Assembly: GCF_016432865.1 (NCBI RefSeq)
Contig: NC_067400.1
Coordinates: forward strand, 629,052,001 to 629,116,000
Source: Antechinus flavipes
Lineage: Eukaryota
Direction: 5' to 3'
DNA: 64,000 nucleotides
The notes below the pieces were generated by a model that was not told where the DNA came from, ran no database searches, and worked only from the letters and a program-made list of their open reading frames with translations. Position numbers and translations under genes: made by a program. Shown here in pieces: positions 51,901 to 64,000 of this stretch (within the stretch, counting starts at the first letter, position 1; each line of letters opens with the position of its first letter).

Positions 51901-54900
51901 TGACAGCCCGCGCTGGACCCCGGGCCCCGTCCGCCGTCTCGGACCTCACCAAGAACTGATACCAGGAGCCAGGGCCGAGGCCCTCGGCAGTGAATCGGGG
52001 CTCCTGGGTGCGTCTGAGCTCCTCGGAGCCAGAGGAGACCCAGGCCACGCTGTAGCTGAGATTGGCGTCTCCCTTGGAGGCCGCCCAGTCGAAGGTGATG
52101 GAGGTGTTGGTCTGGTTCAGCACCTGCAGGTCGGTGACCTCGTTGGGGACTGGGGAGTGAGAGGACAAGTGAGGAAGGGGCCAGAGCAGGGCCGGGGGAG
52201 GGCAGCAATGGCATCCAGCCCAGCAAGGTGAGCCTCCGCCCTCCGCAGGGCCCAGGGAGGCGCGGGGAGGCGGAGTGGGGCAGAGGAGGCTAGGAAGGCT
52301 GCCGAGGCGGGCAACACTGGAGCCTTCTTCCCCCTCTCCCCCTTCTCTTTTCCCCAAAGGCCCCGGTTCTGGCTTCTTGAAAGCAAAGGGTTGGAAGAGA
52401 CGGCCTCTGGTCCCTCCCTGCTCTGAGACTCTGCCATTCCGGGCTCAAAGCCGAGATCCAGATGCTCTCACTGTGTGCCAGGAGACCCTGGGCTCCCTGT
52501 GCCACTGATCATGGCATTGGCCCCAAGAGCCCACCCCCATCTCACCTGTGGCCACCGGGAGGCTCAGGCCGGAGCTGCTGACATCATTCCTCACGGCCCT
52601 CACTGTGAAAGTGTACTCAGTGGCAGCATCCAGGCCTTCCACCTCATGCTCCTTCTTCATTGTATTGGCTTCCCCAACAAGGCCATTCCCCCTGGCCCAG
52701 CTGATCCAGTAGATGTAGTCTGAGTACTGGGGGCCCTTAGGGACCTTCCACTCCAGGGCGACCGAGCTGTTACTCCGGGCTTTCATCCCCAGGTCTTCGA
52801 CCTCATTGGGCACTTAATGAGAAGAGAGAAGAAAAGCAGTGGGGAACAGCTTCCCAGGCTCCCCAGCATAGCTCCAGTCCCTCCCCAGTCCGGGTCCCCC
52901 CCGACTCAGCCGCCAAAGCAATATTCTCAAAGCACAAGTGAACCAAGTTGTGGTCCCCCTCCCAGGGCTCCCTGTTACCTTTGGGATCAGAAATGCCCTT
53001 CACCACCGGCCTTGACTTACCTCATGGTCTAAAGTGGGTCAAGACCCCACGTGGGGTCAACAATTGGCAACAGTAAAAGGTATCAAATATTTCATCAAGA
53101 TTCAGTTCTTTATATCAAAATAAACAAGCACGTCCAGTCATTAGTTTGCTAATTTGTTTTCATTTTTAAAAGGGTTAAAGTATATGCATCGTGAAGAATG
53201 GTTTTTAAAATGAATTTCTCTATAATTTATCACTAGGGTTTGCTTTGTATACCTATTTTATGTGCCTATATACTGGCTTGGCATAAAAATGTCTCATTTG
53301 AAAAGGAGTCGTGAGTGGGAAAGGTTTCAGAAGCTCTGCTCTAGAGCCGTGGTTCTCCCAGTGAACTCCCAGGGATCCTGGGGGTCTCTGAAACTCTTCA
53401 ATTCAAAATTAGTTCTAAATTCTCATATGGTAAATATCTATAAAGATAACCCACATAAAGGAAAACTCTTTGGACAGAACCACAATCATTGTTATTAGAC
53501 TAAATGTAATGAGGGCAGTGGTCAGTAGCCTCACACTTTTGAGGACAGACAGGTGAAAGGAAAGAGAGAATCGAATAAATATGGGGCACATGCAGTTGGC
53601 AACAGTAAATGGAAAAAGAACCTTGAGGCAAGTTTCTCTGATGAGGACTTGCTCCTCAAACTTAGAGGGAATTGAATCAAATTTATGAAAACTAAGAGCC
53701 CTAACCGATAAATGGAAAAAAGATACGACCTCTGCCCAAAGGACTATAGGAACTCAGTCATATTCTTCAACCTAACAAGGCCACTACTGGGTGTGAATAC
53801 CAATAAAATTTTTAAAAAGGAAAAGCTCCTATGTGTAGAAAGAGATTTGTAGCCCTTCTCTTCTCAGAGCAGGAAATTGGAAATTACGGGGGTGCTCAAC
53901 ACTGGAAAATGGCTGAATGAGCTGGGATTGTCATAGAATGTTATTGTTCTGTGGGAAATGAGGAGCAGGATGCTCTCAGAAAAACCTGAAAGTCCTCCAT
54001 GAGCTCACGCAAAGTGAAATGTTCTGTGTGCAAAGCGATGCTCCAGGAAGCCCGGCTGTGAGTGACTTTGCTATCCTCACACTTGCACATTGTGGGTGCC
54101 TGCTAAGTGAATGGCCCATGGCAGATTGATTGGAACGATAGCTAATTAGTGAAGTCAAAGGAAACTCAGGGAGGTCTGAACTCCTGAAGGAGGCAAGGCT
54201 GGGGCCCTCTTCCCCTTCTCCCCCTTCTCTTTTCCCCAAAGACCCCCGGTTCTGGCTTCTTGAAAGCAAAGGGTTGGAAGAGACGGCCTCTGGTCCCTCC
54301 CTGCTCTGAGACTCTGCCATTCCGGGCTCAAAGCCGAGATCCAGATGCTCTCACTGTGTGCCAGGAGACCCTGGGCTCCCTGTGCCACCGGCCACGACAT
54401 CGGCCCCAAGAGCCCGCCCCCATCTCACCTGTGGCCACCAGGAGCCTCAGGCCAGAGCTGTTGACATCATTCCTCACGGCCCTCACTGTGAAATTGTACT
54501 GAGTGGCAGGATCCAGGCCTTCCACCTCATGCTCCGTCTTTGTTGTATTGGCTTCCCCAACAAGGCCATTCTCACTGGTCCAGCTGATCCAGTAGGTGTA
54601 GTTTGCACCTGAGGGGCCCTTAGGGACCTGCCAGTGAAGGGTGACTGAGCTGTTTCTCGGGTCATTCGTCCCCAGGTCTTCGACCTCATTGGGCACTTAA
54701 TGAGAAGAGAGAAGAAAAGCAGTGGGGAACAGCTTCCCAGGCTCCCCAGCATAGCTCCAGTCTCTCCCCAGTCCGGGTCCCCCCCACTCAGCTGCCAAAG
54801 CAATGTTCTTCTCAAAGCACAAGTGAACCAAGTCGTGGTCCCCCTCCCAGGGCTCCCTGTTACCTTTGGGATCAAAAATGCCCTTCACCACCACCCTTGA

Positions 54901-63411: not shown

Positions 63412-64000
63412 CTTAATGAGAAGAGAGAAGAAAAGCAGTGGGGAACAGCTTCCCAGGCTCCCCAGCACAGCTCCAGTCCCTCCCCAGTCCAGGTTCCCCC
63501 CACTCAGCTGCCAAAGCAAAGTGAATGTCAAAGTACAAGTGAACCAAGTCATGGTCCAGCTCCACAACCACCCCACGTCCATTGCATTAATAGACAAATT
63601 TACTTTCACCTTAAATAATGATGAAAGTATATGTACACTAAAGACTTGTTTTCAAAATAATTTTCGTTATGACTTACCAGCAAATGCTTGGTTTCTGTTT
63701 TATGTTCCTATATACTGGGTTCACATTAAAATTTTCCCAGTAAAAAAGGGTCATGAGTGGAAAGAGTTTGAGAAGCTCTGCTCTAGAGCAGTGATTTTCC
63801 AAGTATTCTCCCAAGGATCCTGGGGGTCTCTGAAACACTTTAATTCATTATTGCTTCTGATGTCTAATATGGTAAGCATCTATAAATATAACCCACATAA
63901 AGGAAAACTCTTTGGACAGAACCACAAAAATTGTTATTAGACTAAATGTAATGAGGGCAGTGGTCAGTAGCCTCACACTTTTGAGGACAGGTCGCGTGAA

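Follow-up and report, generated by a model that had tools for sequence, protein, structure and literature searches.

Exon cassettes for fibronectin type III domains in PTPRH of Antechinus flavipes form an old, partly decayed tandem array that probably evolves in concert

The window analyzed here is a 64,000-nucleotide stretch of the genome of Antechinus flavipes (RefSeq assembly GCF_016432865.1, contig NC_067400.1, positions 629,052,001 to 629,116,000 of the forward strand). Translation of the window assigns the coding strand of the gene in question to the minus strand, and sequence comparison identifies this gene as PTPRH (SAP-1), an R3 receptor tyrosine phosphatase, the region of interest being the part that encodes the ectodomain. 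An exhaustive profile search with one of the ectodomain exons (exon C in Table 1) produced the Tasmanian devil PTPRH as the best match, with 7 matching stretches at 72% identity, followed by the opossum PTPRH; the closest proteins carry the name PTPRH in eight other marsupials (including Sarcophilus, Monodelphis, Sminthopsis, and Dromiciops) and in many eutherians. The gene is flanked by a TMEM86B-like (YhhN) gene upstream, the same neighbor as in the devil and in Sminthopsis, and by DNAAF3 (DUF4470/4471) downstream. Its architecture is that shared by the R3 receptor phosphatases (PTPRB, PTPRJ, PTPRO, PTPRQ, and PTPRH), namely an ectodomain of fibronectin type III (FN3) domains, phase-1 exons, and a single protein tyrosine phosphatase (PTP) domain: Pfam fn3 matches exons A, B, and C along with FN3-8, a single transmembrane (TM) stretch is recognizable in the RefSeq product, and the product, mapped to 45997-51203 of the window, has one PF00102 (Y_phosphatase) match, corresponding to a single cytoplasmic PTP domain. 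An earlier reading of the window, made from its letters alone (hereafter, the sequence-only reading), had named the gene PTPRH, an assignment that the nearest named proteins and the TMEM86B and DNAAF3 flanks corroborate.

The layout of the whole gene was obtained from the A. flavipes locus L001 (CM028219.1), which is 100% identical to the window and runs 15.3 kb past its edge (in the megablast alignment, nothing aligned across the run of N at 50216-50595 of the window). The gene consists of two leader exons, one unique FN3 exon, six cassettes denoted R1 to R6, two further unique FN3 exons, and the exons for the TM and PTP parts; the coding sequence ends at about 45997 of the window, and the 5' end of the gene lies 5.3 kb outside the window edge. 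Each cassette is part of a unit of roughly 1.7-2.2 kb that comprises one 267-nt exon of phase 1/1 and its intron. As the sequence-only reading proposed, the array passes the window edge; it extends there by just two more cassettes, R1 and R2, and then ends, so that the total is six, five of them intact and one, exon D, frameshifted.

Table 1. Coordinates of the PTPRH segments and of the inserted endogenous retrovirus (ERV) in the window
Feature	Position	Strand	Remarks
PTPRH part inside the window	45997..64000	-	cassettes R3-R6, two unique membrane-proximal FN3 exons, TM and PTP exons; RefSeq isoform X4 mapped exon by exon
FN3-9, membrane-proximal FN3-like exon	51426..51692	-	no Pfam match; in RefSeq product; conserved in Monodelphis
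FN3-8, unique FN3 exon after the array	51890..52150	-	Pfam fn3; orthologous by position across marsupials
Cassette exon A = R6 (last of the array)	52546-52812	-	267 nt, phase 1/1, intact, 1 sequon
Intron B>A, alpha type	52813..54428	-	1616 bp; 156-167-bp segment at 52963-53128; LINE-like fragment ~53580-54090 (+ strand)
Cassette exon B = R5	54429-54695	-	267 nt, phase 1/1, intact, 5 N-x-S/T sequons
Intron C>B, acceptor-proximal remnant	54696..55053	-	358 bp beside exon B; homologous to other units up to the ERV insertion point
ERV in intron C>B, antisense to PTPRH	55054..61371	+	profile matches; order of long terminal repeat (LTR), primer-binding site, and polypurine tract
ERV 5' LTR	55054-55383	+	330 bp, starts TGTAATGG
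ERV primer-binding site, presumably tRNA-Lys type	55386-55404	+	TGGCGCCCAACATGGGAAC
ERV gag (p24, two zinc knuckles)	55951-57330	+
ERV protease (retroviral aspartyl)	57688-57987	+
ERV reverse transcriptase (RVT_1, thumb), RNase H, integrase (zinc, core, and C-terminal domains)	57879-60610	+
ERV env TM remnant, short	~60755-61075	+
ERV four 55-bp repeats	61124-61347	+	62-100% identical to the reference copy
ERV polypurine tract	~61343-61363	+
ERV 3' LTR, first 8 nt only	61364-61371	+
Intron C>B, donor-proximal remnant	61372..61407	-	36 bp beside exon C
Cassette exon C = R4	61408-61674	-	267 nt, phase 1/1, intact, 4 sequons
Intron D>C, beta type	61675..63146	-	1472 bp; without the 156-bp segment; LINE-like ORF2 3' fragment ~62280-62800 (+ strand)
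Cassette exon D = R3	63147-63411	-	265 nt, splice sites intact, frameshifted

Self-comparison of the 48-64 kb region reveals four related units, which start at about 52310 (A), 54192 (B), 61372 (C), and 62901 (D), with start-to-start spacings of 1883 bp from A to B and 1737-1742 bp from C to D. The B-C spacing is 6979 bp because a 6.3-kb ERV replaces most of intron C>B, so the array is split between B and C, a point that the sequence-only reading missed. All four exons in the window have identical contexts, with AG/GT borders and phase 1/1 (acceptor ending in ...CTCATTAAG, donor starting with GTGAGATG), and the identity of the splice contexts extends to all six cassette exons of the locus. Thus, the four repeated units with phase-1/1 exons in the sequence-only reading were recovered, as were, by count, the five N-glycosylation sequons of unit B; the length of 267 nt, attributed there to the exon of each unit, applies to A, B, and C and not to D. 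Exons A, B, and C match Pfam fn3 with E-values from 6e-9 to 2e-11, and the AlphaFold2 model of exon C is a seven-strand FN3 sandwich with a mean confidence (pLDDT) of 89.9. Exon D has lost 2 bp at about 63364, some 47 nt into the exon; the entering frame reads through fifteen normal residues, shifts, and terminates after eight more, making D a pseudo-exon as assembled, and its 5' half is used by no RefSeq model.

The repetition is not limited to the exons. The introns of the cassette units are repeated whole, at 89-96% identity: C and D units are 96.3% identical over 892 bp, A and B units are 92% identical over 830 bp, and, between the two pairs, 53129-54847 matches 61832-63563 at 88.4% over 1740 bp. 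Intron D>C and the next upstream intron (63412 onward) are 96.4% identical. The introns of C and D, previously described as near-identical, are indeed the closest pair, at a divergence of 3.6-3.7%. The indel of about 170 bp that was said to separate A/B from C/D is a segment of about 156-167 bp present in A/B; across the locus, it occurs in the introns after R1, R4, and R5 and not in those after R2 and R3. The R1 unit is 2175 bp long because of a private insertion of about 340 bp in intron R1>R2 (positions ~13800-14140 of L001, outside the window). Every complete unit contains a fragment resembling a long interspersed nuclear element (LINE), with diverged copies elsewhere in the loci compared here, and the very high depth of contigs at 62601-62800 marks this piece as an interspersed repeat. 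Self-alignment therefore bears out the duplication of whole introns together with an embedded repeat; as for the more specific label of L1 given to that repeat, it is LINE-like and high-copy, and searches of Pfam, PDB sequences, and the ESM Atlas yielded no match that would confirm the L1 identity. The translation at 62498-62695 resembles the C-terminus of L1 ORF2, a similarity that no database match confirmed.

The relationships among the cassettes of three dasyurids bear on how the array evolves. The number of cassettes is 6 in Antechinus, 10 in the devil (Sarcophilus), and 5 in Sminthopsis, where all five are intact; five of the devil cassettes contain numerous stops and indels, one has a length of 266 nt and one of 264 nt. 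In a tree of exon DNA (21 exons), the copies group by species, with values of 100/100 for Sminthopsis and 89/87 for Sarcophilus, except for one decayed, long-branch copy (R5) of the latter, and with Antechinus separate. Trees of the interior introns likewise group by species (Sminthopsis 100/99, Sarcophilus 99/98). The edge introns, those before the first and after the last cassette, group across species, as orthologues. Distances between introns were taken from local alignments because global alignments of the short introns (R4, R6) with the long ones gave meaningless values.

Within Antechinus, identity is distributed along the units as a mosaic. All units are 94-98% identical over the 450 nt next to the donor, and the mid-intron sequences form an alpha and a beta family, with an identity of only 68-89% between the two. 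The non-adjacent introns R1>R2 and R5>R6 share some 150-bp windows at 98-99% identity, flanked by windows at 82-91%; identical runs between alpha and beta pairs are longer than expected by chance (permutation tests, p <= 0.001); among 122 informative sites with a 2:2 distribution, 108 back the alpha/beta split and 14 conflict with it. In the exons, the motifs MKAR/NDPR and QYSD/SGAN occur among the cassettes in all four combinations. Together, the mosaic identity and the four motif combinations constitute a signature of unequal crossing-over plus gene conversion.

To assess how general this behavior is, FN3 domains were cut from PTPRH predictions of nine marsupials and ten eutherians. In the tree of these 19 therians, the central domains of one species nearly always group together: among marsupials, four domains in the opossum, five (identical) in the monito del monte, three each in the bilby and the brushtail possum, and two in the koala; among eutherians, three each in the warthog and the desman, four and seven in two shrews, four each in the elephant shrew, the sloth, and the marmot, five each in the deer mouse and the rabbit, and six in the pika. 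Grouping by position is seen for the first and the last two FN3 domains of marsupials; among eutherians it is limited to the last two, the first one joining the central domains of its own species. At the DNA level, the array of the monito del monte, Dromiciops gliroides, is the most homogeneous seen, with five units of about 0.9 kb that are 98-98.7% identical and encode the five identical FN3 domains (positions 2361-6453 of locus L004); Sorex has 1.88-kb units at 96.5-98.4% identity, and the units of Ochotona are 98-99.6% identical. Judging by these identities, the arrays of Dromiciops, Sorex, and Ochotona are younger than that of Antechinus. The sequence-only reading took eight diverged FN3 domains as the therian norm, a premise that does not fit the near-identical central FN3 domains seen as a rule in all 19 species. 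It also named, as an outcome that would undermine it, units equally present and equally old in all therian PTPRH genes; arrays turn out to be present in all of them and old in none.

Taken together, these comparisons make a case, to which we assign a probability of about 0.82, that the FN3 cassettes of PTPRH are a tandem array under concerted evolution, general to therians and, in Antechinus, old and partly decayed. Its generality across therian PTPRH, through unequal crossing-over and gene conversion, appears well supported by the species-wise clustering. In this scheme, unequal crossing-over would duplicate and delete entire cassettes and gene conversion would copy tracts from one cassette to another, so that the cassettes become more alike within a species than they are to their counterparts elsewhere, with orthology preserved at the edges of the array and in the first and the last two FN3 domains. 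We infer this mechanism from the patterns of identity. The array in Antechinus would be one in which turnover is slow and partly offset by decay, as suggested by the frameshift in D and by the intron that suffered a retroviral insertion and a 1.5-kb deletion. The cassettes themselves might act as glycosylated spacers that can more or less replace one another and whose sequence is weakly constrained, with a ratio of nonsynonymous to synonymous substitution rates (dN/dS) of about 1. With respect to the earlier proposal of a genomic tandem array shaped by unequal crossing-over, the units, the trees, the mosaic identity, and the differences in copy number between species all speak in its favor.

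Several observations weigh against this interpretation or restrict it. The beta mid-intron is 88.6% identical to devil units, close to the orthologous distance, and only about 70-80% identical to the alpha units of Antechinus itself; therefore, some unit lineages predate the Antechinus-devil split. Homogenization thus seems to be incomplete, and the species-wise clustering partly depends on the segment analyzed. Amplification of a single cassette in each lineage, without gene conversion, would yield similar trees. The protein survey uses gene predictions that may collapse or misjoin repeats, and the devil and opossum models are visibly imperfect. Finally, the 2-bp deletion in exon D, one of the signs of decay, is a feature of the sequence as assembled.

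The age of the Antechinus array can be gauged against unique sequence. Orthologous unique sequences of Antechinus diverge from those of the devil by 8.4-10.8% and from those of Sminthopsis by 11-14%, and the youngest pair of Antechinus units differs by 3.6%, the remaining pairs by 5.5-10.7%; hence, the last large event in this haplotype has about one third the age of the separation from the devil lineage, an age that would amount to millions of years. Antechinus has as many intact cassettes as Sminthopsis, five, which in Antechinus make eight FN3 domains together with the three unique FN3 exons; Sminthopsis shares the layout of the flanking unique exons.

Among the five intact Antechinus cassettes, there are 41 nonsynonymous and 7 synonymous segregating changes, giving a dN/dS of about 1.75 with a binomial p of 0.11 for the deficit of synonymous changes; the corresponding values are about 1.1 in Sminthopsis and 0.9 in the devil. 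The pairwise point estimate exceeds 1 in 13 of the 15 Antechinus pairs, and the variable residues show some clustering in strand A and in the B-C loop. In the three dasyurids, neither pairwise dN/dS nor the count of segregating changes gave a significant signal of positive selection. The data fit weak constraint, with diversifying selection neither shown nor excluded.

The RefSeq annotation of the locus requires caution in this context. A word search with the devil protein retrieves 23 RefSeq isoforms of A. flavipes PTPRH, of 1011, 922, or 833 residues, that is, in steps of 89, with a maximum of four cassette equivalents in any of them. Several isoforms contain hybrid cassettes, made of the 5' half of R2 and the 3' half of D or of the 5' half of C and the 3' half of B. 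The hybrid joins are at a shared GAG/GTGGAAGG motif, which supplies a GT..AG "intron" exactly one unit long. The sites of these joins are at 14330-14375, 16062-16107, 17800-17850, and 24779-24829 of L001 and, in window coordinates, at 63220-63264, 61477-61526, and 54498-54547 as well as beyond the edge. The hybrid models are probable alignment artefacts, as judged from the position of the joins, and we rejected the 23 isoforms as evidence of alternative cassette splicing or of hybrid alleles because the joins lie on a shared cryptic GT..AG.

A stronger version of concerted evolution can be contemplated, in which the therian FN3 array is a fast-turnover module, polymorphic within species and under selection from host-microbe interaction or for glycocalyx height, and the hybrid RefSeq cassettes are real recombinant alleles. 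If true, each lineage would re-make near-identical glycosylated domains on the gut brush border; on the present evidence, we regard this version as unlikely.

More specific to Antechinus, and still less probable in our judgment, is the proposal of the sequence-only reading that the array is expanding now, with a polymorphic copy number and with adaptive changes of length and glycan load driven by pathogens, glycocalyx height, or size-based segregation. Cassette number does differ among the dasyurids, some units share windows of 150-300 bp at 99-100% identity, most of the dN/dS estimates in Antechinus are greater than 1, and the hybrid cassettes of the RefSeq isoforms could be recombinant alleles of the RNA donors. 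Against this, the youngest pair of units is already 3.6% diverged and one of its members, D, is frameshifted, another unit is damaged by the ERV and a deletion, and the number of intact cassettes is the same as in Sminthopsis. Likewise, dN/dS is not significantly above 1 and is close to 1 in the sister taxa, so that pathogen pressure was not shown, and the hybrid joins sit exactly on GAG/GTGGAAGG, as expected of misaligned reads in repeats. Ongoing growth of the array in Antechinus is therefore unsupported.

Pure birth-and-death, in which one cassette is re-amplified in each lineage and the older ones are lost, without gene conversion, would leave the mosaic to variation of mutation rate or selection along the unit. 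The decayed devil cassettes and pseudo-exon D show that cassette death happens, and the greatest similarity is between adjacent units (R2>R3 and R3>R4), as expected of tandem duplication. What makes this scenario improbable is the pattern between units that are not adjacent, with the stretches of 98-99% identity in R1>R2 and R5>R6 set among far less similar ones, along with the reassortment of the two exon motifs and the 14 conflicting sites.

An assembly artefact, with haplotypes or collapsed reads laid in tandem, is very unlikely: the most similar units, C and D, are adjacent, nearby repeats and the ERV make mis-assembly possible, and the devil locus carries a suspicious 16.6-kb duplicate with a divergence of 0.2-0.5%, but the Antechinus units differ by 3.6-11% and by private indels (156 bp, 340 bp, the 2 bp in D, and the ERV), therefore far above allelic difference, independent runs and samples contain short contigs that agree with unit-specific stretches to within 0-1 differences in about 200 bp (X7, for instance, at 62156-62358 and 63710-63927; the read data are Logan unitigs of 70-500 bp, none of which bridges a unit), and the same array architecture is found in the assemblies of five other species. 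The sequence-only reading had itself listed false duplication as a finding that would overturn it, and the divergence and private indels of the units point the other way.

In the devil, cassettes R8-R10 with their introns are 99.5-99.8% identical to R1-R3, lie 16.6 kb apart from them, and have the same decayed exons (positions 4947-9117 and 21554-25735 of locus L002), which reflects either a very recent segmental duplication or a duplication in the reference assembly. The devil RefSeq PTPRH protein (862 aa) is visibly misjoined.

With regard to previous work, a study of the R3 phosphatases (PMC5336234; Chicote et al. 2017) reported that their FN3 repeats are mostly encoded by one exon each, with phase-1 introns, and that the FN3 B-C loop codes of human and mouse PTPRH "seem species specific," unlike those of the other R3 members; the FN3 repeats were deliberately kept out of its phylogeny, and, in contrast to the present analysis, no tandem exon-plus-intron units, concerted evolution, or change in copy number are described there. 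In a review of PTP variants, SAP-1 is presented simply as a protein with eight FNIII domains. Our literature search retrieved no paper linking PTPRH with concerted evolution, and searches for PTPRH with variable number tandem repeats, gene conversion, or intragenic duplication returned nothing relevant. It thus appears that the PTPRH ectodomain has not been described before as a recombining array of exon cassettes in therians.

Two other arrays are instructive for comparison. The kringle IV-2 array of LPA also consists of head-to-tail, in-frame units of exon and intron, is homogenized by unequal crossing-over, and changes the length of the protein in steps of one unit; it differs in that each unit is about 5.5 kb long and has two exons, the units are nearly identical, and their copy number is highly polymorphic within a single species, whereas the PTPRH units of Antechinus are 3.6-11% diverged. 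The SRCR-SID array of DMBT1 and the transmembrane mucins of the gut brush border are, like PTPRH, surface glycoproteins of the gut with repeated glycosylated modules that vary through recombination. In the case of DMBT1, copy number varies between individuals and affects bacterial binding, whereas for the PTPRH cassettes, selection was not detected here and no ligand or microbe is known to bind them.

The usual picture of PTPRH is that of a receptor with a constant set of eight FN3 domains, from which the data depart: stable orthology is limited to the first and the last two FN3 domains, and the middle block seems to have been rebuilt in every therian lineage, such that residue-by-residue comparisons of this block between human, mouse, and other species are not comparisons of orthologues. 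Gene models across the array are unreliable; the broken models of the devil and the opossum and the 23 "isoforms" of antechinus are examples. The length of the ectodomain and its glycan load can change in steps of 89 residues. With PTPRH, a signaling receptor joins the few genes, such as LPA and DMBT1, that have large in-frame arrays of exon-plus-intron units. For Antechinus itself, the finding is an ordinary one, an oldish and partly decayed instance.

The ERV between B and C, inserted antisense to PTPRH, retains the order LTR, primer-binding site, gag, pro, pol, (env), polypurine tract, and LTR, with the 3' LTR cut to 8 nt and env to a remnant, and stops and frameshifts disrupt its reading frames in several places. 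Because only 358 bp and 36 bp of intron C>B are kept, about 1.2 kb of the host intron appears to be gone together with the 3' LTR, including the 3' flank in which a target-site duplication would lie; as a result of the latter loss, self-comparison of the window yields no LTR pair for dating. The ERV is absent from the PTPRH loci of the devil and Sminthopsis. Other copies continue at 61371 into LTR sequence, as indicated by loose ends of contigs, and one or two of the 55-bp repeats located just upstream of the polypurine tract are missing from many contigs derived from such copies; therefore, the number of these repeats varies within the family. In four runs representing three organisms, contig depth over the ERV exceeds that of the unit sequence by three to four orders of magnitude, from which it follows that the family is massively amplified and probably is a young dasyurid one.

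The LTR, the TGGCGCCCAAC... primer-binding site, presumably of the Lys type, gag p24, the aspartyl protease, reverse transcriptase, RNase H, integrase, and the polypurine tract are features in common with betaretrovirus-like (class II, ERV-K-type) ERVs; the placement in class II through the primer-binding site is likewise presumptive. The insert differs from such elements in that env is reduced to the TM remnant, the 3' LTR to 8 nt, the reading frames are broken, and the copy number of the family is very high.

Two short tandem repeats are located in PTPRH introns on the 3' side of the array. A 22-nt repeat resembling proline codons (CCCTGGCCCCCGGGCTCCCTCT, 5 copies) occupies 51305-51415, in the intron that separates the TM exon from the membrane-proximal FN3 exon. 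A G-rich minisatellite of 24 nt (GGAGGGAGGGGGGGCAAGGAGGC, about 13 copies), located in an intron of the PTP part, spans 48232-48550 and 48685-48743, with a local GC content of 0.70 and a strong GC skew.

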